Notes under the pieces: model-generated
Told to the model about the DNA's origin: nothing
Seen by the model: the letters and a program-made list of their open reading frames with translations, nothing else
Databases searched by the model: none
Part shown: one piece after another, positions 23,675-64,000 of the stretch
Layout of the letters: every line of letters begins with the position of its first letter
How positions within the stretch are numbered: the stretch's first letter is position 1
Made by a program: the position numbers and the translations under genes
Origin: Paragordius varius
Taxonomy: Eukaryota; Animalia; Nematomorpha
Length of the DNA: 64,000 nucleotides
Reading direction: 5' to 3'
Assembly (NCBI GenBank): GCA_964247055.1
Contig: OZ176056.1
Coordinates: forward strand, 806,001-870,000

Positions 23675-33276
<9,602 letters not shown>

Positions 33277-44887: not shown

Positions 44888-46401
44888 CAGTGGCGTACCG
44901 AGCATTTGCGGCGCCCTGGGCATAAAACACTTATGGCGCCCCAACCCCCCCCCCCCCCCCCCCTTACTCTTTTTGAAAGCCAATAAAACAATTTAGTAAA
45001 AAAATATAAACGTTCTTGATGCTTCATTAAAATTAAAGGATCTTGCAATCTATGTTGAACCCTATCCATTCTTATAAGTATTTGATGCCCGATAAAAATC
45101 AATGTTAAAAAATTGAAATTTAAAACACTCTGAGGTAAAATGAATGCCTCTCTTCTTGTTTCACTAATATTTAAAGTATTATTGCTTGAATCTTCTAAAA
45201 GCGTTATCAAATCATTCATTCCCTCAATAATGGCATTAACTGCTTGATTTCTAGCATACACGGCTTAAGACTCACGCATAACAGTTTTTTTAGTTTATTT
45301 TTTAATAGGTCCCATCTAATAGAAGAGATTTCCAGGATTTAGTGCTGAGGCATCTAGATATATTAAACCTGCAACATATCCTCGAAAAGGGAGATTTTTT
45401 AGAAATTTCATACAGGCCAATATTCGAGGTAATAAGATCGATCAAAAAGTAGGCAACAAAATCAATACTCAGGTGTGTTCTTTGGTGAATATAAAAACCA
45501 ACTCTCAACTTCAATCCTTCTTTTTACCGACACGTCGAAAAAACGATTGAGGCATTGAACGATGGTTTTTTGTTTCAAAGAGATGACATTTATTTTGATA
45601 TACTTGAGATCCACGAATAATCTCTCTGTGCGAAGCTGGTTAGATATTACGGGAGAAACATTATTATTAGAAACAGGCGACATCATTGAACTCTATAGGT
45701 TAGCGCTTGGAATTACTAATGGTATATTTGTAGTCCCTATATATGGTTTCAGTTGTAAAGTTATTATTAAGGGGTGCCGTTATGTTTGGGTAGCATACAC
45801 TTTTTCAATGTTAGGGTCAGATATTTTCGTTAAATAAGATTTCATACTCATTCGTTTTTTGTTTATTTTATTCTCTTCCTGGATTTTTCGTTTCCTATTT
45901 GCATAACCGCTGAGTTTGGGCATTGATATATGATGAAAATGAAAGTAAATATAAAAAACAAGGCTATATTGGTAAACCTTGTTAGAGATGGTATGATCTT
46001 GTTGATTTTAATAAATAAAATTGGGTTATGAAATTGAATATGCATAAAATAAAAAGGCAATTATAAAATATAAGATTAGATAAGGTTTTGAACAGAGCGA
46101 GAAGTTAAAATAATTTAATTAAAGGCCATAAGAGAATTAATAATATGTGCGAGATAAAGAAACGTTTTTTAAGCGAAAAAATAAGCATGTTGAAGGGAGT
46201 AATTAAAGTTGTTTTTTGCATAATGTTTGATCTTGATCTCATATAAGATTATATTATTTTAGGGATTACCTAAGTTGCTGAAAAATCCTACTTGAAAATT
46301 ATTACTATTTTTGTATAATTTAAATTTAATTTAAAAAAATCATTTAGGCGCCCCTAAATAACGGCGCCCGGGGCATGTGCCCCCCCATCGGTACGCCACT
46401 G
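44888..46401 (-). mobile_element. Internally deleted hAT transposon, copy 1
   Basis: Perfect 14-bp TIR CAGTGGCGTACCGA and exact 8-bp TSD CTCGGGGT (44880-44887 / 46402-46409). The - strand carries remnants of a TTF-type zinc finger (SWFLYSPK..Y.FCCLLF) and hAT catalytic region. Confidence 0.93.
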
Positions 46402-47777: not shown

Positions 47778-50039
47778 CAGGGGTGTCCAACACAAATCAG
47801 TGGCGTACCGAGCATTTGCGGCGCCCGGGGCATAAAACTCCAATGGCGCCCCCTCTCTCCTCCTCTTTTTGTAAGCCAATAAAACTATTTAGTAAAAAAA
47901 TATTAAAGTCTTTAAATGCTTCATTAAAATTAATTTTAGGATCTTTATGTTGAACCCTATCGATGATGGCAGAAAAAAATCAATGTTAAAAAACTGTTTA
48001 AAACACTCTGAAGTAAAATGAATGTCTCACTTCTTGTTTCACTAGTATTTAAAGTATTTTTACTTAAATCTTCTAATAGCTCTATCAAATCATCTATTCT
48101 CTCAACAATGGGATTAACCGCTTAAATTCTAGCACTCCATCGGGCTTCAGACTCACGGTTAACAGTTTTTTTTATTTTTCAATAGGCTAATAGTTAAAAA
48201 AGATGAATATTTTCAATTATTCCGAAACAGGTCACAACAAAAACATCTTGTTTTGCTACCGTGACTATTACCAAATTCAAGGAACGAGTGTCACAATTAG
48301 CAATTGCTTATTATTTCCAAAACTTTGTTGAACGCCTGAAATGCGACCCGACATCACACCTACATTATTATAGCATTGAGATCTACAATTTGATAACTAA
48401 ATATTATCCATATTTAAATTTTCTAAAATTCTTTTCAATTGACAGTCCATCTTTGTTGAATAACTGAAAAAACCCAAAAAGGATACCTTTATGACAACTC
48501 TATTTTTCTCATATTTAATAAACACCTACCTGGCAACTTGAGAAATTTGTTCTCGGCGCTATATCTGCGTTAGATCAAATATAAGTCCATAATATTTACT
48601 TTTTTAATGTCATTTATCAATTTAGTTTTAACTCTTGAAGCCAAAAGATGTATAAACTTGTTTTGGATTTTGGATGAAACATAGGTTAAAGTGTTAGGAG
48701 ATTCAATGTTTCTCATGTGTTCTCCCCTTATTGGGTCAAACCGAGCTACAAGTTGTAGTGAAGATAAGATTCCAGGATTTGGTGCTTAGTTATCTAGATA
48801 CATTACTCTTGCAACATGTCCTCGAAAAAGGAAATTTTGGTTGATTAGAAATTTCATGCAAGCCAATATTCGATGTAATAAGATCGATCAAAAAGTAGGC
48901 AACAATAACCATACGCATATCTGTTCTTTGGTGAATATAAAAACCAAGACCCAACTTCAAATCCTTCTTTTTTACCGACCGACACGTCGAAAAAATCAAG
49001 ATTGGGGCATTGAACGATGATTTTTTGTTTCAAAGAGATGGCAATCATTTTGATATACTTGAGGTCCACGAATAATCATTTCTGTGCAAAGATTATGAGA
49101 TTTTACTAGAGGAACATTATTATTAGAAAAAGGCGACATTATTAAACTCTATAGATATATCGCTTGGAATTACTAATGGTATATTTGTCTCATCTCTAAC
49201 ATTGGATCAATAACTAGGGTTTCAGGTGTATTAAGTTATTTTGTAGGGGGTGTTATATTCGGGTCTCATACACTTTTTCAATGTTGGGGTCAGATATTTT
49301 CGTTAAATGAGATTTCATACTCATTCGCATTTTATTTTATTTATTCTCTTCATGGATTTACCGTTTCCTATTTGCATAACCGCTGAGTTTAGGCATTGGT
49401 ATCTGATGAAAAGTATTTATAAAAAATACAAGGCTATTAAGAAGAGATAAGGTTTTGAACAAAGCGAGAAGTTAAGATAATTTAATTAAAGGCAATAAAA
49501 GAATTAACAATATGTGCAGAAACGTTTTTCAAGCGAAATAATAAGTTTGTGTTGGAGGGAATAATGAAAGTTGTTTTTTGCATAATGTTTGATCTTGATC
49601 TCATTTATATAATTTTTATATAGAAATTACCTAAGTTGCTGAAAAATCTTACTTGAAAGTTGTTATTATTTTTGCATAATTTAAATGTAATTTAAAAAAA
49701 CATTTAGGCGCCCCTAAATAACGGCGCCCGGGGCATGATGCAACCCCTTGCCCCCCCATCGGTACGCCTCTGACACAAATGGCTTTGTAGACCACATTTT
49801 AAAAAATCCGACGGGCCGCATAATATGGGAATCAACAAACATTTTATTAGATTTTAAACATAAGACTGTAAAAACTAGTATTATTTTTACAGTTTTTGCT
49901 ATTTCATGCCCGAATGAAATTCGGAGAGATTATGTAGAAAATTTGTCTGAGGAAAATCAATTTTATTTAGATTCTGCAATTTGTATTTGAAACTTCTCGC
50001 GGACTGCAATATCTTGGAGGGCAGAGTGTGAAACACCTG
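47778..50039. mobile_element. Charlie-type hAT element interrupted by hAT copy 2
   Basis: Starts caggggtgtccaac, resumes after 49780 with a gacgggccgca subterminal motif; degenerate end gtgaaacacctg near 50039. Similar ends at ~16043 and ~56682. Confidence 0.5.
47798..49772 (-). mobile_element. Internally deleted hAT transposon, copy 2
   Basis: Same TIR (one mismatch at the right end) and exact 8-bp TSD ACACAAAT (47790-47797 / 49773-49780). Retains extra transposase sequence (LVARFDP...YVSSKIQNKFIHLLA; SEARWSARI*AV). Confidence 0.93.
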
Positions 50040-50177
50040 TTTATAATTAAAAAAATAAAAAACAATTTATTTTCTATATTAATAGGCGCCTAAAATACAT
50101 GTTTCAATATAACTGTTAGTCAATTTATTACAAGAATTTATTTAAAATTAATAATAAATAATGATTCCTGTTTTTTT

Positions 50178-53100
50178 CTAAATTTCTCCAACATCGGTGT
50201 CAGCTAAAAAAATAAATGAAATATATAATTTCGCGTTTAAAGTTAATTTATTTTAAATAAAATTTATATTTTCTACAAAACCTACAGCTTCCAGATCTAT
50301 AGAGAGAAAATATAATTTAATATTTTTTAGAATAAATTATATATTCTTACATTCCTCGGCGTTTACCATATCTGTTTAAAATTGAATTAAAATATAAATC
50401 TTACCATTTAAATCTTCCGATATTTCTAATAAAAAATTTATTCAAGCATATATGTACCCACAATGTTTTGGTCCGTAGCTAAAATATTTTTTATAAAAAA
50501 AATTAGCCAAAATTATATTTAAAAGTTGTCAAGAATTTTTTTTATAAATCCAAACTGAACCTATGACTCCGGTTGCACCTTCTAAAACATAATATAATTT
50601 ACATTAAAATAAAAATAATACCTGTATATCTTTGCTCCAGAACTGTTTATATAAGAACATGTTTTTTTAAAAAAAATTTCAAATATATAAGAGAAATATG
50701 GCTTGGTTTTCGACTGGTATAAAATATGCGGTAAAAAGTTAATTAAATTTGAAAGAATTAAAACTAAGATAAAACATAAAATTGGTTCTTAATTGAATAT
50801 TTTAAATATTTTTAATTTTAGAATAAATAAATTTTACATCATAATTTTACACATGATAAACACATAACAAAAATTAGATTGGCTATTTTCATAAGCTGTT
50901 ACGGTCACAGTATCGTTTATAAGGGCATTTGAAATAAAAAACTGATCAAACCCAATCTTACTTATAATATTAACCTTGGAATTGGTCCTCTACATCTTAA
51001 ATTAAAATAATATTGAAATTTATGTAAAAAATATACCTTCCAACAGTTCTTTTACATCTAAAAAATATATATTATAATAATTTTGATTAAATTAAAGTTT
51101 ATACTTGAAATTTGATCCCTAAAAACTATGAAAGAAATTATTATTTAAATAATAATTGTTTGGGTGTAATGCCAATTATAACATACTTTGTAAGAAATCT
51201 ACAATAAATTATTGCAATTATTAAAATAGAGTATACTTGATTCGCCCAAAGCTGTAAAATATTGAATTATAAAATCAAATTTTTATAAACTCTTACAATT
51301 TAGGAGGCTTTGAGGTTCTGAACCACTCATGCGCATGACTAAAATTTATGCAATGAATATTAATTAATTCTAACTTTCAGATTAAATATAAAGCTATCCA
51401 AATTTATAATTTGTTTATAAGTAAAAAATATGGATTTTAATTAATCTTAACAAAAGTATTTGACTTTTGAAAATGTCAGACGTAACATTTGAAAAAAAGG
51501 CAACTTGTGAAAGCCTTCCTATTGTTGAATACTGGTTACTGAATACAAGACCCTCCTAATTTTATACATTTAATGAATTCGCTTACATTTTTTTTTAAAA
51601 ACCATTGTCAGCAAATAAATGGTGTCTTTAATGAAAGCGATTATCATTAATACGATGATCAAGTTAAATTATATTACATTCTGAAAAACCCCGTTTAAAA
51701 CATATGCATATTAAAAAATAATTTACTTCGATCAAAAAATCTGGCATCTTTATGATAAATAAGAAATATTATAAAAAAATTAAAAGACAAAATAAAAAGT
51801 AGCTAATAAAACAGTACTTGAAACTATGTTTTGCGTTTCTTCCACCAAATTTTCTGCACCTACAATGTTAATTATTTTATTACAAAGTCCTTACCTGTTC
51901 CCAAACTTTGCAGAGCTATATATTTTATAAAAATGTGATACCCAAACAGTAAAAATAGAAATTATATGGACAAAATGTAAAAATATAAAAAATTTCTAAA
52001 AGACAACAACCATACTTGTTTAAACCTTAATTTTTCTATGAAAACATTTAATTACAATCGTAAGATGTATATAGTTGATTGTGTTAAATATTTACATCTC
52101 TATTTCATACTTTAAAGTTTTATATAAAAGTAAGATAAGATTTAAAATGTATGGTTATAAAAATATTGACTATATATAACGTTTTGTTCATATTTTTTAT
52201 TAAAATAATTATACATTAATAATTATTAATGTGCCAAATAATAAAAATATACTGAATTCTCCCTTATCAATTAAAATCTTAAACTTATCATTTGTTTTTA
52301 AACATTCGATTTTTACTGTTAATTATTAAAATGTTATTTTTTAAAAAAAAAATAAATGATACCTGTCCTCATTTGATACGTTGCTACAGTTATAAAAAAT
52401 TTTAATTTATAAAAATAATTAATTATATCATTTATACGTCAAATTGGTACAACTCAAATTCCCCTCAAAAATAAATAATTGTGTGTTTTCTAGCAAAATT
52501 AAATCATAATTAATATGAATTATTTCTCTATAAAATAGTATATGTTATTTTTCAAATATTTTGTTAATTTAAAACGAAATTTCATTTTTGAAATTAAAAA
52601 AAATATATGTATACTTTAAAATTCAATTATACACAATATATTTAAGGTGAATTTGAATCGTTCGAGGGTGAATTTGAATTGTTCGAGGGTGAATTTGATG
52701 TGTAATTGGTATAATTTTATATATTCTTTTTATTGTAATTTATAGAAAAATATGAGTTTTACTCTGTTGACCGACGATTTCTCGAGCTGATAAAATATAA
52801 AAAAAATGGTTTTAAAATGTTCTGAACAAATCCTTAAAAATAATAAAATTAAACATTTACCAGTTTGAATTTCTTGAGGTGTATGTTGTGGTCTACTAGC
52901 TAAGAAATATGGTATCCAGTAAAAAGGGGAATTATACAGACGTGTCAAACAAATATTTTTTTCTAAAGAATGCTATTATACATTTTTAAACCTTAATTAT
53001 TTTACGAAATAAACTATTTAAATACAATTTTAGATGATATAATAATACTTAGTATTAACACTTTACATCTCTAGTCCATATTTTGCAAAGTAAAAAATGA

Positions 53101-56100
53101 AAATATACGGACAAAACGGAAAAATACAAATACCCTTTTTTAATCAAAAGACAACCATACCTATTTAAACCTTAATTTATCTTATAAAATTACAATCGAA
53201 ATATAAATAAATGATTATATTACCAATATACATATCTATTTCGTAAAAACAGTTTAAAACAAGGCGTCACATTTAGAAACACATATTTTAAAAACGATGG
53301 TTGTCTTTAAAATAATATTTGTCCTTAAATTTTTACATCTGTATAATTTCAATTTTTACTCTATTATAATTAATATAAATTTTTAGATAAAATTTAATTA
53401 CCAATATCCTCAGTATCTAATCTAGGTCTCTTTGCAGGTGGGCCAGCTTAAAATATAATTAATTTTATTTAATTTAAATAAATATTCAAGATAAAAATTA
53501 AAAAATATTTATTAAACAAGCATTTCTTACCCTCGCTTTCGGCATCTGTAACGAAAATAATTATAAATTTTTCAAATTTTATAATTTATACAAATTTTAA
53601 ATTATATAGATTTTTTTAAATAGAGATTAATGGATATGTAAATTTAGCAATAATTAACCATGAATTTTTCGATTACTACAAGATATCTTTGTTGTATGTA
53701 ATAATAAAACAGTTGTAACTTTTTGCGGGACTAATTATTTAAAATTTTTTTATGTTCAAAAAATTCGCTTACCAAAATTAATAATTACTTTATGTTTTTA
53801 AATTTCCAAAAAATGTAAATATACCATACCCAAATTTGGATTTGACCGCGAAGGGCCTGCATTTTCCAGAGAATTTTGTTCGCCATTGTTTTCTTGAACT
53901 GATTGGAGGTCGCCATTTTCATTATTTTGCATTTCTTGATTATCGCTATTGGATTGTTGAGGTTCAGTTGGATTTTCATCACCATCATTATTAGTGTTTA
54001 GATTTTCTTCAGAATTACTGAGCCCATTGGCACCTCCTTGTACAATGGAACCACTAATTGCTGTTCCCTGAGAGGCTTCAGCTCCAACAATCCCTTAAAT
54101 AGTTTACAGCATGCAAAGATCCTTTTAGATTTTTAGGTTAATTTTATAAAACTGGGATATGTAATTAATATTTAATTATAGAGTAATTTTCAGTAAAAAA
54201 TTAGAATACTAGTTTAAAATCTAAGCGATTGGGTTACTTATGTTTTGAACTCTTTAGATAAAAAAACATTATCCAAAATGAGTTATCCAGTATAATTTTG
54301 AAAGGTAAAGAATAATAAAATAGAATTATATTTTACGGTTAAAATTTTATGCCTACAAATAAATTAAAAATCGAATTTGGTTTTTCAAAAGATTTTTAAT
54401 TGTAACTATTGTATTAAACTATTAAGCATGAAATAGAGATGTAAATTGATCAATGTAAAATAAAATTTTATAGAAAAAGTGTGTTTGCCTTTTGAAAAAA
54501 ATTTGTCTGTCCGTATAATTTCAATTTTTATAATATATTTTTTTAATTTTTAAACCAATTAGGGTATTTATTTATAAAAATAGGTTTAAATTTTTAAAGC
54601 TTGACAGAATCCATATTAATTTTGCAGGGTTAACTGTCAGAAAGATTGTTGAAATTATACGGACAAAGCAAAAAACATATAATAACAACTTTTTTTGAAA
54701 AAGTATTTTTTTAAACTCGTTTTAATTTTTACAGCCTTTATATTTCAAAAATATATACTTACCGCCAAATACACCTGTAAATTGATGAAAAATTGTTATA
54801 ACATTGTATGTGAAAAAAAAATTAATTTAGAATTCATAAAATTTTCATACCTGTAGATGCTATATATAAAAACATAGGAATGATTTAAATTCTTTCTATG
54901 AACAAAGATTTGATTGTAACTATTATTTTTAAAATAAAACATTTAATAACTACATAATTTTATCTAAAATAAAAAAAAATTATTACAGTAAAAATCGAAA
55001 TCATACGGACAAAACGTAAAAATGTAATGACAAATATTTTGTTTAAAAGACCACTCTATTTTTGTAACTTTTAGTCTTTTATATAAATTATTTAATCACA
55101 ATATAATACTAATTCATTATTATCTATAATTACTACTTTGCAGTTTGATATAATGGGTTATACTCCAAAAATCAAATTTATAAAGGTGCAGAGCGGTTTT
55201 TTTGAAAACAAATATGGGTCTCTTTATTTTTACGTTTTGTCCGTATAATGATACTACTGTATGTTTTAAAATTTATTTATTTTATATTGCATACCTCCAA
55301 GGATAGCAGCGGATGTTCCAATTATCGTTGATATACCATTGTTTAGATTGGTAGATGTTTTATTTAAGTTTTTATGTGTCGCCTTATTACCTATGGCTTT
55401 GGGTCGATTAAATTCAAATCTCACATGGTTTTTATTATTAACGGGCGGTTTTTTCGTTCTTTGAGAAATTTGAGAAGACGAAACATTATTATGTCCCGAG
55501 GTATTTAAATTATTTCTATTATTTTTATTTTCTTCATTGTAAGTATTTAGAGTGGTGGTATTAAAATTTGCGGATAATTCAGCAAGGAATCGATTCAAAG
55601 AAAGCACCACTATGATAAAAAAAAAATCTAACTAATAGGATAGGTTTTAATACTATAAATATGGGTATTTTATAGTGATAGAAATATTGACCAATTTAAT
55701 GTATTTTAGTTTTACTTTACGAATTAAATTACATTTTCTAAATAACGCGTGTCCCCCTCCCTTTTCCTCCTCAGAAAATAGAGATTGAACTCTATTCACA
55801 TAATAAAATATTTTTAGGCCAAAATAATTTAATTTAGTATAATAACATTGATTCTTAAATAAATAAAAATAGCGGATAGCTAGTTTTATCAATACAACTT
55901 AAATGGGTATTTTAATCATAGTATCTCAAATGAAAAAGCAACTTTTTTATCTATTAAATATTCAACACAATGTTCCGCCTCATAAATTGATTTTCCAGTA
56001 ATAAGAAGCCAATATAGGATCAATCTTGTGCATATTATTATTATAACCTTTAATTCAATGTTTAATTCAACAAAATCAATACGAAGTTTTACCTTTTACC

Positions 56101-56534
56101 CCCAATAAAACCGGTCCGACTGCATATATGCCTTAAATAAGGGTATTAAACAGATTTTATACTACTACAGCAAATATTTAACTTAAAAAATTCATATTAA
56201 AAAGGAAACACCAATTTTTCTTTTAAATAGTTGTATAATTTAATGTCTATAGAAAAAGAAGTAGGCTTTATAGTTTTAAAAACCAATATATATTTAAACA
56301 CAACGGGTAATGAATGAATGTTTTATGTTGATTGGTTATCTCTAAAAGCGGTTTTAATTGGGTAAAATTAATATTTGGTTATAACACTCTTAAAAAGGGT
56401 TAAAATCAGTTCAATTTTTGTTTAAATTTTTTTTAATTAAAATCCATCTATTGATCGATATTCTTAATGATAGTATTTTCTTCAACGGATTGGGTTGGAA
56501 TATAAAAAAAATATAAATTTGTTTAAGCTTACAT
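50178..56534 (-). CDS. Uncharacterised putative secreted protein (~377 aa) encoded by a micro-exon gene
   Basis: Exons 56534-56533 (AT), 56131-56100, 55609-55295, 54859-54851, 54774-54763, 54093-53830, 53787-53773, 53545-53531, 53446-53402, 52899-52861, 52786-52763, 52383-52363, 51915-51895, 51859-51818, 51747-51727, 51338-51297, 51251-51237, 51198-51187, 51057-51037, 50995-50975, 50642-50622, 50581-50561, 50478-50458, 50425-50405, 50371-50351, 50296-50282 and 50203-50178 (stop). Every exon from 55609 to 50282 is AG/GT-bounded, a multiple of 3 and phase 1, and the joined frame is open. Confidence 0.8.
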
Positions 56535-59500
56535 GGCGCTCTGTCTGTATTGTTCTGAAAAGATATACATAATATTAGGTAAAATAATTAAAGAAAAACT
56601 ATATATCTTACGATTTTAAAATATTTCAAAAAACATAAAGCAAATTATCTTATTCTTATTGATGGATATCAAGCTTTAAACCAGGGGTCTCCACTGCCCG
56701 CGAAATACATAATTTGTAATGATTTTATCAAAAATTTTACTAAATAGTTCTTAAACAAATTTTTTTAAATTGGTCGATAAGCAATGAGCTAGATAAAATT
56801 GTTATGATATATATCTATTTTACAATCCTATGGTTAAAATCTAAGATATTTTTAAAGCCCATATACAGTTAAAAATACGGACTAAACGTAAAAATATAAA
56901 GACAAATATTTTTTTAAAATACCATACTTTTAAAATATAAATCATTGCTGAGACAAAGTGGGATACAGTTAGATAAACTAAGACAATCAATTCTATATTT
57001 TACAATTGTACTTGAAACAGCTTATGTGGGAAAAATTAAGGTTTAAAAAAGTATGGGGTTGTCTTTTAAAAAAAATATTTGTCTTTATATTTTTACATTT
57101 TGTCCCTATAAGGGCCAGTTATGTGTTTGACTATAAAATGCAGTCTGCTAAACTATTTGTGTTAGAAACTCAATTTAGAAAAAAATATCTCAAGATCAAT
57201 AATTGAAGGCTGATCTTAAAAAATTTGATTCGAAATTAAAATCAAATAAAATTCACGTTTAAACTATTTATATATATAAAACAAAATATATGATATAAAT
57301 TTTCATACCGGATAAGCTGATTTTTATAATAAAAATATCATTACATTAAATATAAACCATTTACAGTTCAAATTCACCCTTAAAGAATTCAAATTCACCT
57401 TAAAATTGATTGTGTGTTTAATATTAAAAATTACCTTTATTTTAAAATATTTTTAAAATATGAAATTCTATTTAAAATTAATATAATAAAGAATAAACTA
57501 TGTCGTAAAAATATATTTAATATTAATGATGAGTTAGTTATATTAGCTGCCCGAAAACACATAATTTATTTTTGGGGTGAATTTGAATTGTTTAAGGGCA
57601 AATATGAATTATAATTGGTATATAATATATAATAGTTTTACCTATTATCACTCTATAATCATTAGGGGCTCCAGTTAAATTGAGACCTTTGGAAAGGACA
57701 TTCCAAATAACTTAAAAACAATTAAAAATCATAAAATTAAAAATGAATTTTTTTTTCAATTTATAAAGATTTCAAACAACCTTGACTATGATTCTGTAAA
57801 GGTGGCGATGAAAAGGCATCTATAAAAAAATTATTAAATATATCACTATAAGTATATAACAAATCATGGTTTATGGAATTTTAAAAAGGATTTATAAACA
57901 ATTTAAAATCGGTTTTAATATTTTAATGGATTTAAGATGGCTAAAAATATTTTTAAGTCTCATGATTGTGGAAATTGAAAAGAAATCGCTTCCCGAGGGC
58001 ATGATTTAATTTTTTTTTAATTTTTTTTCGATAATAACCAATTAAATATTGACTATTATAATTTTTAATAAAGTGTAAAAAAATTGGAAATTAAGATTTT
58101 TCATTATGATATTTAAGTCAAAAATAGATAATAAAAATCTCATTAAAATATTTTTAAAAAATTTAAAATACTTTGGCACAGAATAACTAGAATAAACAAT
58201 TTTTTAAACATTTCGGCAAAAAATCAAATTTTGAATTATTAATATTTTTAGTAATTTAAAATTTTTTATTATTATATAAAGATATTTATAACTGATAGCT
58301 GCTATTTTTAGATTCCAATCACACAAACATAAAATAAAGTTCAAAGTACATTATAAGACCAACAAATACGGAATATATATATTATATATTTTTTTAATCA
58401 TTTTATTTCGATTCACTTTTATAAATATTTTTGATAATAAATATCGCATTTATTTTGTAAAATAAAATAATTTTAATAAAGTGTTACTTTATTTAAGCGG
58501 CGGCATACCATATAATTTTTTTAAAGATGTCATGAAAAATGGCTCTATATGTACTAATTATTTTAATTTTTGTTTCTGTTAGCAAAATTTTCAAAGATAT
58601 ATTAAAAAATTTGTTTTAAAAAAAATTAAAAATTTAGTTTATCTTTAATAAAAAAATCGTATCTATTATCCTTTACGGTTTTCAGCCATAATAAATGACA
58701 ATTTTTACCTTAAAGAACTCACTCATGGCACTTTACGAAATCTAATCAAAGGGTAATAGGTGTCATAAACCATTTTTAATTCAAATTCACCCTTGAACAA
58801 TTCACATTCATCCTAAAAATAAATTATGTGTGTTCGGGCAGCTAATATAACTCATCATTAATAAGAAACATTTTCTTATGGCAGAGTTTATTATTTTTTC
58901 AGTATTATTATTAATTTTAAACGAAATTTCATTTTTTAAACATATATATAATATAGGTAATCTTAAAAAGCACATAATTTATTTTAGGGTGAATTAAAAC
59001 TGTAAATCGTATATAGAAATATTTGACTAAAATAATATTTTTAAGAATTGGTAAAAAACAATATTTTATATTAAATAGATATATTTATAACTTTAATCAG
59101 ATTTTTCTTAAATTATAAAATGTTGTATTTATTATTATGATTTATTTTTTCAATTTCCCGGGCTGTAAAATTTTTGGAGGGGCGCATATAAAAAATAACC
59201 ATATATATATATATATATATTGGGGTAATCACTGAAAAAATATTATAAAAAAATTTGCAAAAAGCATTTGAGGGCATTTTAAATCGAGCCTAGGATTTCT
59301 TTTATTATTAAAAAATAGATATACCATAGACATAGAGTGTTAATATCATAAGTTATTTTCTTTTAAGAATAATGTATTTTTATTCAATAAAATCACCATT
59401 TTCGACTTAAATACTAAATATAACCTGGCAGAACAAATTATTTCATTATTTTCATTTTATATAATAAGAAATAAAATAATTTCTATTCCTAATTTCAACC

Positions 59501-61331: not shown

Positions 61332-64000
61332 ATGTTTATTCCAATGATATGGCTCCTTACGACAGTATTTGATAATATTAAATAATATTTTTTATATATT
61401 AAGATAATATATACCTTAAAAATTTATATAGATTTTTTTCCGAACTATAATTAATTTATTCCACCGAATTTAATTATAAAAGTTACATTATTAGAGATAT
61501 TTTTGTATTGATTTTTTTAGATATTTTTTGACGGAAATTTCGCTTCTAATTTACACACAGATATTGAGTTTCAAGTAATATGGAATTCACCCACTCAAGT
61601 TTGTTCCGAAAGGTTTGAGAAAAGTTTTATATAATATTAATTAAAACTAAATTTTATATTCGCCACAAAAATTATTTTTAGCATAAATATAGATTTCAAC
61701 AAAGTTTATATCATCGCTTTAGTCGTAAATTTTATAATTGGGTTCAAAATTTTGGGTATTTGAAACCGCATTCCTTTTTAAACAATAAAGACTTTTAAAA
61801 AAGGTTTTTCATAAATCCTAAAACCAAATGATATATAATTGCCATATAATTGCAATGAAATTAAAATCATTGGAGTTTCCGCTCCAAATTTAGGCATTAA
61901 AGCGGGATTCCATTTCTAAACATGTCTTAAAACTTTAAAAGTAGAAATTATACGGACAAAACGTAAAAATATAAAGACAAATATTTTGTTTTAAAAGAAT
62001 CACACTTTTTTGAACCTTAATTTTAAGTTATTAAGTTACAATAAATAAAAATTGTTTTACTAATATACATATCAATTTCATACTTTTCTATTAAAAACAA
62101 CGAATCAATTATAATCAAAATCAAGATTAAAAAGTATGGTTGTCTTTTAAAAAAAATATTTATTTTTATATTTTTAGGTTTTGTTCGTATTCTAATTGCA
62201 ATTTTTACTGTATATTATCAGATATGGGAACGATTTAAACCTTGGCAAATATGGCATCCGAAGTAATGTTAAAGAGTCCTGGAGAGGTCATTTAGTAAAT
62301 TGCTTATACATAACACAATGTGGAATGTGGCCACGTATATTACAAGATAGAAAAAACGATCAAAATAAGCATCAACTAATCAATGGAGGAATCCCACAGT
62401 TAGGAGACTTATCTGCGCATTTACAAACGCTTGAAAAGCATTTAAATCAACACATGCCAGACGCAAATTTTTCGGTATTTCAATCCCTTTTTACTTTGAA
62501 AACCCAAACAACTCTTTTTTTATTCAAGAAAAAACTAAATATTTTTTGAAACAGCAGTATGACTAAGTATACATTGCTAGTTTTTTTTGTTAGATATTGC
62601 CAGATAGTATATTCAGCAAAGAGCAAAATAGTATTGGCTTATATTTTTTTCACTGTTGTATAACATTAGTCAAAAATAATTTATTTGCTGTTGATATTTA
62701 ACGAAAAACTAGCTATATAACTCACTTGAACTGTATAAAAGGACAACATTATAAAACATTCTTTTTACCAAAACAAATCTGTCTTTGTGTTTTTATAAAA
62801 AACATTTAGTAATACAACTCATTTTTTGTAAAGAAATAGAAACTATTGCGTGAAATATAGTGTTTTATAAAAGAAATTGCATTATAATGTTGTTTTTGAA
62901 TAAAAAAATGGCAAATCCGTGTATGTAATTAATTTTGAACATAATCACCTTGAATAATAATTATATTTAAAACATTTTATATTGGCTGCCCCAAGTCAGA
63001 TTTTAATGAAAAGGTATTTAAATTAAATTTATTCTAAAGAATGAAATATTCTTTTATATATCCAATATTCTAACATTTATTGTTAGTCAAAAATATTTTA
63101 ATTTTTTAGATATATTGAGATGATTTGGTCATATTATAAAGCGCATATATAAACAATTTATTTGATCCATATATTGACATTTATAGGGATTGGGTGTTTT
63201 AGATATGGAGGAATATGTCCCATGGTTCAATAATTTAAATTTCGGACCCTATATGAAGTATTGGGTAATATATGTAAAATTATAAATTTATTTTTTAAAT
63301 TAATTTGCTCCTTAACTAATTTATACTTGTAATGCATGATTTTTTAAAAAATTAAAATATTCTTTATATATTTATAGAACCTTTCGATTGAAACCATCAA
63401 AAATGAGTATCCAACAATTCAAGATCGTTATATAATTAAACAATATGCCGCGCGTGAATATGAAAAAAGTATAAAAACCTTCCTGACCCAAACTTTAGAT
63501 AGGGCAAAGGCAGCCCGAAAAAATGCTCACTGGGGATATTGGGGTTATCCTTTTTGTGCACGGTAATATTAGATGTTTATTTTAATTTTTGAATTTACGT
63601 GAACTTTTGTTAATGGCTTACGATGAAATCTATATATTTTTATTTATATTACTAAAGATAATGGAATATTTGCATTTTTGGTTTACTGATTCGTAATATT
63701 TTTATGATATTTCAAACTTTGTACAAAACAAAATTATTTAATACCGTTTCTTATTATTATATGATAATTTTTAAATTTTCATGATTAAAATGAAATAATT
63801 ATAATCTTCTAAAACTGTCATTTATTAAAAAGTGTTTCGTAAAATAATTTTTTTAATATTCTCATTATTTGGTAGAACGTTTATGGATCTCCAATGTGAA
63901 AACAAATTACAAAATCTTAACAATGCAATCTATTGGCTTTGGGCCGAATCAGCTGTTTTATATCCTTCCCTGTATTTAAATCGCCGGGCCATACCTGACA
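61332..64000 (+). CDS. Secreted hyaluronidase (glycoside hydrolase family 56), 5' part, continues off the right end
   Basis: Exons 61332-61364 (MFIPMIWLLTT), 61521-61612 (FQVIWNSPTQVC), 62222-62474 (NGGIPQLGDLSAHL), 63187-63264 (GLGVLDMEEY, catalytic D-x-E), 63378-63562 (TFLTQTLDRAK...WGYWGYPFC) and 63876 to end (WLWAESAVLYPSLYL). Confidence 0.93.

Follow-up and report, generated by a model that had tools for sequence, protein, structure and literature searches.

The 64,000-nt stretch of Paragordius varius DNA analysed here (contig OZ176056.1, positions 806,001 to 870,000; "the window" below, with its first letter as position 1) carries on its minus strand, between 56554 and 50178, a chain of very small exons that with high probability represents a real protein-coding gene. 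When rebuilt by script, 25 exons running from 55609 down to 50178 are each preceded by AG and followed by GT and join into a single open frame; every intron between them is in phase 1, and the internal exons are all divisible by three. With two short 5' exons added, the complete model comprises 27 exons that encode 379 amino acids in 1,140 coding nt. A first-pass annotation made from the letters alone had described 22 micro-exons with AG/GT borders, lengths divisible by three, phase 1 throughout and one open frame, and the rebuilt chain agrees with it; the observation of the micro-exon chain is confirmed. The total in that annotation's exon list was also right, but two details were not: a single 15-nt exon rather than two precedes the 45-nt exon, and the terminal series of 21-nt exons numbers eight rather than seven.

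Read in the direction of transcription, and with all coordinates on the minus strand, exon 3 (55295-55609, 315 nt) is followed by two micro-exons of 9 nt (54851-54859) and 12 nt (54763-54774), by a second large exon of 264 nt (53830-54093), and then by an uninterrupted run of 20 micro-exons. This run opens with exons of 15 nt (53531-53545), 45 nt (53402-53446; AGPPAKRPRLDTEDI), 39 nt (52861-52899) and 24 nt (52763-52786), continues with 21 nt (52363-52383, one seven-residue unit or heptad), 21 nt (51895-51915), 42 nt (51818-51859, two heptads), 21 nt (51727-51747), 42 nt (51297-51338, again two heptads), 15 nt (51237-51251) and 12 nt (51187-51198), and then reaches the eight exons of 21 nt (51105-51125, 51037-51057, 50975-50995, 50622-50642, 50561-50581, 50458-50478, 50405-50425 and 50351-50371) and a final one of 15 nt (50282-50296). 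Each of the 22 micro-exons lies between AG and GT in phase 1. The last coding exon (50178-50203) contributes 26 coding nt and ends in the stop codon TAG at 50180-50178; two AATAAA poly(A)-signal-like hexamers lie at 50124-50142 on the same strand, 36-54 nt 3' of the stop codon.

The micro-exons thus span 9-45 nt, with 11 of the 22 being exactly 21 nt long, and fall into consecutive runs of 2 and 20. They make up 81% of the exons (22 of 27) but 44% of the coding bases; the 315-nt and 264-nt exons together hold 51% of the coding sequence. Donors read GTA in 23 of the 26 introns and GTT in the other three, and the acceptor is TAG, CAG or AAG in all 26. The introns come in two size classes, 14 of 32-84 nt and 12 of 284-669 nt, in line with the earlier remark that some are as short as 32-45 nt. 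Equally well founded were the descriptions of the micro-exons as GC-richer islands (41% G+C against 19% in the introns) and of nearly any subset of them as skippable in frame: 323 of the 325 conceivable exon-to-exon joins create no stop codon at the junction.

The 5' end required two further exons, there being no in-frame ATG at the start of exon 3. A 22-nt exon (56533-56554), preceded by AG and ending in ..GAGCGCCAT (closing letters GCGCCAT) before the donor GTAAGC, would supply the A and T of the start codon as its last two bases, and a 32-nt exon 2 (56100-56131), which opens with G and ends in phase 1, would complete it. Joining the two makes an ATG in a GC-rich, Kozak-like context whose frame continues into exon 3, and the start codon is accordingly modelled as an ATG that the first intron probably splits. 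The end of exon 2 carries tandem donors, GTAAAAG and GTAAAAC, 7 nt apart (56093-56100), of which only the first, giving the 32-nt form, links the split ATG to the frame of exon 3. The alternative donor at 56093 would yield a symmetric 39-nt exon that encodes a hydrophobic stretch (IYAVGPVLLGVK) but has no start codon. No convincing further coding exon was found upstream between 56.6 and 64 kb.

Coding signal of the exon chain and conservation of one exon

The window is AT-rich (20-32% G+C per 2 kb), and the gene region alone holds 185 open phase-1 AG..GT segments of any quality. A fixed filter was applied to the whole window on both strands, which demanded an open phase-1 AG..GT segment of 6-66 nt with a G+C fraction of at least 0.33 and at least 0.12 above that of its flanks, together with a donor reading GTA and pyrimidine-rich sequence upstream. 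It returned 15 candidates on the minus strand at 50-56 kb, 0 on the plus strand of the same stretch, and about 27 in the remaining ~120 kb of both strands, or about 0.2 per kb. Some 1.4 candidates would be expected in the gene stretch as compared to the 15 observed; the density is about ten times higher, and by our own arithmetic the Poisson tail is about 1e-11. Such an excess, falling in one collinear chain on one strand, argues that the exon pattern is more than chance. No other consistent exon chain exists, and nearly all further candidates of acceptable quality overlap exons of the model. Matches to tRNA models or to Rfam were absent from the window.

The frame of the model is likewise supported by composition. 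The window holds, on the plus strand at 24436-25179, a CHMP5 gene in a single uninterrupted open reading frame (ORF), and the codon-position composition of this undoubted ORF (24436-25176) fits the 22 micro-exons best in the model frame, the other two frames being worse by 41-70 log-likelihood units. Over all 27 exons the frame is intact, with no stop and no broken splice site in 1,140 nt.

Sequencing runs add a comparative view. Four of them (X1-X4) contain the whole stretch including its introns, one (X3) at a depth of 78, and so represent DNA of the same organism. A fifth run under a different species label (X5) matches the 264-nt exon at about 90% identity, and it matches the window only at 53826-54122: the similarity extends beyond the donor by 4 nt and beyond the acceptor by 29 nt, after which the contigs continue for 239-255 nt in unlike sequence. 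The relative has an in-frame 3-nt deletion at 53987, and 6 of the 12 substitutions listed with positions are synonymous, the rest being mostly Ser/Thr or Ala/Gly exchanges, with no stop created. The limits of the match, the 3-nt deletion and the pattern of substitution together indicate that the 264-nt exon is coding and conserved, and that its borders are those of the model. We note in passing a 151-nt contig in a run from 2025 under a third organism label (X11), which is identical to the window at 53808-53958. It includes 22 nt of intron and is for that reason DNA-like; it stems either from the same species under a different name or from DNA carry-over, and is not an RNA product.

The predicted protein and the known micro-exon genes

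The model protein is about 41 kDa with an isoelectric point (pI) of 4.6, and has no Trp and a single Cys. Its first 16 residues hold Arg6 followed by GFIGVVLSL (mean Kyte-Doolittle hydropathy 2.4), a short stretch that is compatible with a signal peptide, on an N-terminus that follows from the proposed start codon. A basic (pI 10.8), Asn-rich stretch with four N-x-S/T sequons spans residues 17-102, and a weakly hydrophobic one rich in Gly, Ala, Ser and Thr (best 19-residue Kyte-Doolittle mean 1.5) spans residues 103-130; residues 148-211 are acidic and rich in Asn, Gln and Glu, and are followed by PPAKRPRLD. In terms of the gene, exon 3 encodes the basic, Asn-rich part with its four sequons and the beginning of the hydrophobic segment rich in Gly, Ala and Ser, and the 264-nt exon encodes the end of that segment and the acidic Asn/Gln/Glu-rich region. 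The last ~135 residues are acidic, and among the periods tested a hydrophobic period of 3.5 residues has the strongest power (permutation p = 0.008). From these features we would picture an N-terminus resembling a signal peptide (MHICSRTGFIGVVLSL..), a basic Asn-rich part, a weakly hydrophobic segment, an acidic and probably disordered stretch, the PPAKRPRLD motif and, finally, a predicted acidic amphipathic helical tail of ~135 amino acids. Secretion, as the first-pass annotation had proposed, is possible on this layout.

The periodicity of the tail is written into the gene structure. Fifteen seven-residue units are obtained from the eleven 21-nt exons and from the two 42-nt exons halved, and strongly hydrophobic residues occur 3, 8, 2, 2, 7, 10 and 2 times at unit positions 1 to 7. 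The hydrophobic residues therefore sit at exon positions 2 and 5/6, from which it follows that one exon corresponds to one heptad and that the introns cut the repeat at the same point each time.

Micro-exon genes have been defined structurally in tapeworms such as Echinococcus and Hymenolepis as genes of at least seven exons, at least half of which are micro-exons shorter than 70 nt and divisible by three, with a run of at least four (Olson et al. 2020, PMC7653826). The gene described here has 27 exons, of which 22 (81%) are micro-exons, and a run of 20, and so falls within the same structural definition as those tapeworm genes; its host lineage differs from theirs, and the class is set by shape and not by descent, with no homology shown.

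Similar in shape, too, are the micro-exon genes (MEGs) of schistosomes, which have 10-20 exons of 6-81 nt, mostly of 15 nt, with introns of 100-5000 nt, and encode proteins of up to 189 amino acids with a constant signal peptide, after which comes a hydrophobic/aromatic motif ending in Trp plus a polar and a basic residue (Nedvedova et al. 2023, PMC10526429). With these genes (see also DeMarco et al. 2010, PMC2909574) our gene shares long runs of tiny exons divisible by three that can be dropped without a frameshift, a hydrophobic N-terminus, which in our gene is a predicted one, a lack of homologues outside a narrow lineage, as judged in our gene from the two large exons, and a structure that is hard for gene finders. 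The differences are as plain. The protein of 379 amino acids exceeds the 189 of the schistosome proteins; two large exons hold half of the coding sequence, whereas the schistosome genes consist almost wholly of micro-exons; the modal micro-exon is 21 nt, that is one heptad, as compared to mostly 15 nt; 14 of the 26 introns measure 32-84 nt, several of the long ones being long only through insertions resembling miniature inverted-repeat transposable elements (MITEs), as compared to 100-5000 nt; and, there being no Trp, the Trp-ending motif after the signal peptide is absent. The interpretation given in the first-pass annotation is thus supported in part: the MEG-like architecture that it claimed holds for the structural definition, but the resemblance does not extend to the size, intron length and motif of the schistosome MEGs. 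The gene is a micro-exon gene by shape and not a demonstrated relative of the flatworm families, and its own feature is the heptad-sized exon.

Two other architectures invite comparison. Fibrillar collagens are built from 54-nt exons that encode whole Gly-X-Y repeats, and exons of whole repeats that share one intron phase are the classical footprint of the duplication of an exon together with its intron. Like the collagen genes, the present gene has exon lengths that correspond to whole structural repeats and introns that share one phase; unlike theirs, its unit is a seven-residue heptad, three times smaller, and its exons are no longer alike in DNA. The neuronal micro-exons of bilaterians (3-27 nt), by contrast, are single alternative exons in conserved genes, with long flanking introns and regulation by SRRM4-type factors. 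These are also very short and frame-preserving, but here 20 micro-exons follow one another and make up a domain.

Database homology searches were made with the two large exons. A word-indexed protein search of these returned nothing, Pfam gave only a sub-threshold match to DUF6582, an exhaustive HMMER search against 1.84 billion representatives gave one spurious match to an Asn/Thr-rich FN3 repeat protein, and the ESM Atlas gave nothing above chance, so that the earlier statement that no homolog was recognised is borne out for both large exons. A tblastn search of the window with the model protein returned as a paralogue candidate only the gene itself; weak matches at 61.5-61.8 kb were put down to chance. 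The literature consulted, whose coverage is incomplete, contained no link between nematomorphs and micro-exon genes.

We take the gene to be real with high probability, and to be a variation on a known architecture in a lineage where it was not expected. Micro-exon genes have so far been treated as a peculiarity of parasitic flatworms, linked to secreted proteins of the host interface, and a well-supported example in another animal lineage would show that the design arises repeatedly. The gene would also make it possible to ask in a second system whether micro-exons serve to generate variants or are a by-product of building a repeat domain, and in its one-exon-one-heptad layout gene structure mirrors protein periodicity at the smallest scale known to us. 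Genes of this kind escape ORF scans as well as most gene finders and read mappers, and the proteome of the host is consequently likely to be under-annotated in this class.

Splicing, origin of the array and competing readings

Several of the longer introns owe their length to one family of MITE-like insertions with inverted ends (..ACAGTAAAAAT.GAAAT.ATACGGACAAAACG..), which occurs in at least four introns of the gene and once upstream (~61945-61990). One insertion (51945-52320) fills most of a 447-nt intron, of which ~71 nt are left, and another (52918-53360) most of a 502-nt intron, leaving ~59 nt; a third (55000-55249) lies inside a 435-nt intron, and fragments of the same family occupy 54499-54675, again within an intron. 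As two introns would be ~59-71 nt without their insertions, the gene probably once had short introns almost throughout. The possibility that the element created the introns was considered and rejected: the insertions lie within introns and are flanked on both sides by a further 45-140 nt of intron. A GC-richer island at 52646-52704, in a 379-nt intron, is no exon and consists of ~2.5 tandem copies of a 21-nt unit (CAAATTCACCCTCGAACxATT).

A short intron is recognised as a unit across its own length, and tiny exons can then be spliced without the steric problems that exon definition would pose for them; intron definition in turn tends to lead to intron retention and not to exon skipping. With 14 of 26 introns at 32-84 nt, the geometry of the gene would favour constitutive removal or intron retention over skipping. 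For the micro-exons, constitutive splicing through the recognition of short introns is most likely; these introns would have measured 32-84 nt until several were enlarged by MITE-like insertions. For the product, an acidic helical protein, either secreted or membrane-associated, is most likely. The design would at the same time permit exons to be skipped with no loss of reading frame or heptad register; combinatorial diversification nonetheless found no support in the RNA search and is less likely than constitutive splicing, a ranking that follows from the short introns.

As to how the array arose, the 21-nt exons are no more similar in DNA to one another than codon-permuted controls (p ~0.1), although one adjacent pair is 67% identical, and no direct repeats joining the exon units were found in the gene. 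A recent exon duplication is rejected on these two grounds, and if the array did grow by duplication it would have done so long ago. The uniform design, with every intron in phase 1 and every internal exon divisible by three, most likely reflects the way in which a heptad-repeat region was assembled or subdivided, either by old duplication of an exon plus its intron or by regular intron gain, and it need not be an adaptation for exon skipping.

Our preferred reading, to which we assign a probability of about 0.7, is that the locus holds an intact, lineage-restricted, minus-strand coding gene of 27 exons and 379 amino acids, most likely spliced constitutively and most likely encoding a secreted or membrane-associated acidic helical product. 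Several points weigh against it. No RNA contig covers the gene; an RNA assembly under the same species label (X6) placed nothing on the 264-nt exon, and the other RNA runs have no words in common with the gene stretch. This absence is weak evidence, since 21-nt exons, once spliced, leave no 31-mer common to transcript and genome, and the RNA assemblies are small. The comparative support covers one large exon, that of 264 nt, and no micro-exon. The restriction to one lineage is judged from homology searches of the two large exons, not of the spliced C-terminal half that the micro-exons encode. The N-terminus hangs on a putative start codon split by an intron and on the choice of the donor for the 32-nt over the 39-nt exon, the segment of residues 103-130 is borderline as a predicted membrane helix, and a duplication origin of the array is not demonstrated, given that the 21-nt exons show no DNA similarity beyond chance.

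The competing readings differ in how much of the model they leave standing. That the AG..GT segments of the chain line up by chance, or that the gene is dead and unexpressed, we hold to be highly improbable. It could draw on the lack of support from the RNA search and on the 185 phase-1 segments of the region, short open ones being common in AT-rich DNA; yet strong candidates are enriched about tenfold in one collinear chain on one strand, the composition is coding-like in one specific frame, 27 exons have stayed intact over 1,140 nt although ~9% of random codons would be stops, and the 264-nt exon is kept in a relative whose flanking introns cannot be aligned. Alternatively, the exon model may be right and the protein not secreted, either because the N-terminus is wrong or because the product is cytosolic or nuclear, with KRPR directing it to the nucleus and the tail forming a coiled coil for interaction. 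We consider this unlikely while granting it a real share of the doubt: PPAKRPRLD does look like a nuclear localisation signal of the classical basic type, acidity and heptad periodicity mark the tail, the start codon is a deduction with a symmetric 39-nt form of exon 2 as its alternative, and the hydrophobic core of the putative signal peptide is short at 9 residues. Against it stand the lack of a convincing coding exon in the 56.6-64 kb interval, the GC-rich Kozak-like context of the ATG, which stands out in a genome of 24% G+C, and the four N-x-S/T sequons that follow the hydrophobic start, even if Asn-rich proteins gain sequons by chance.

The first-pass annotation had gone further, and saw a MEG-like gene for a secreted protein whose purpose is to produce many variants by combinatorial skipping of micro-exons. 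We think this improbable, for all that the structure of the gene is that of the published definition, that 323 of 325 joins stay open, that the exons of the tail are mostly whole heptads, so that skipping would keep the helical register, and that the N-terminus is compatible with a signal peptide. Three donors are weak, with GTT in place of GTA, and the host is possibly a parasite (hairworm-like), as are the flatworms that bear MEGs. However, the RNA search gave no isoform and no transcript; the 14 introns of 32-84 nt have the geometry of intron-defined, mostly constitutive splicing, in contrast to the 100-5000 nt of schistosome MEG introns; two ordinary exons account for half of the coding sequence; and the protein, double the length of any MEG protein, has no Trp and is without the motif that follows the signal peptide. 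In the same spirit, and with as little confidence, one may speculate that micro-exon genes evolved independently in a non-flatworm animal, perhaps a parasitic hairworm, with the exon equal to the heptad, that skipping of any subset would yield proteins, secreted or on the surface, of varying helix length and helix surface with frame and register kept, and that the gene is one of a wider family. If true, this would be a register-safe system of combinatorial variation. Constitutive splicing of an intact coding gene is the reading that we retain.

CHMP5 and other features of the window

The CHMP5 ORF used above as a compositional standard also bears on the affinity of the host. Among its best 120 matches the closest is the protein of the nematomorph Gordionus, at 56% identity, with cnidarians and vertebrates next at 49-53%, and those 120 matches include no flatworm, nematode or rotifer. 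As one marker with a small margin, this is a lead on lineage affinity. The window's own CHMP5 is not on record.

In Gordionus the CHMP5 gene encodes 234 amino acids and is spread with introns over 8.4 kb (L001:10001-18462), at a locus of 26.6% G+C. Its neighbours there are Rad1, RPS20 and Tim10, unlike the neighbours in the window, and DKC1 is not among them; an attempt to arrive by synteny at an annotated relative, starting from the Gordionus CHMP5 locus, was dropped for these reasons. The window's uninterrupted copy could be a retrogene.

Downstream of the micro-exon gene, two ORF fragments on the minus strand (45302-45686 and 48790-49069) have similar translations (..SLKQK.IVQC.N..FFDVSV...E.. 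SWFLYSPKN..), and are probably remnants of a dispersed repeat or transposon.

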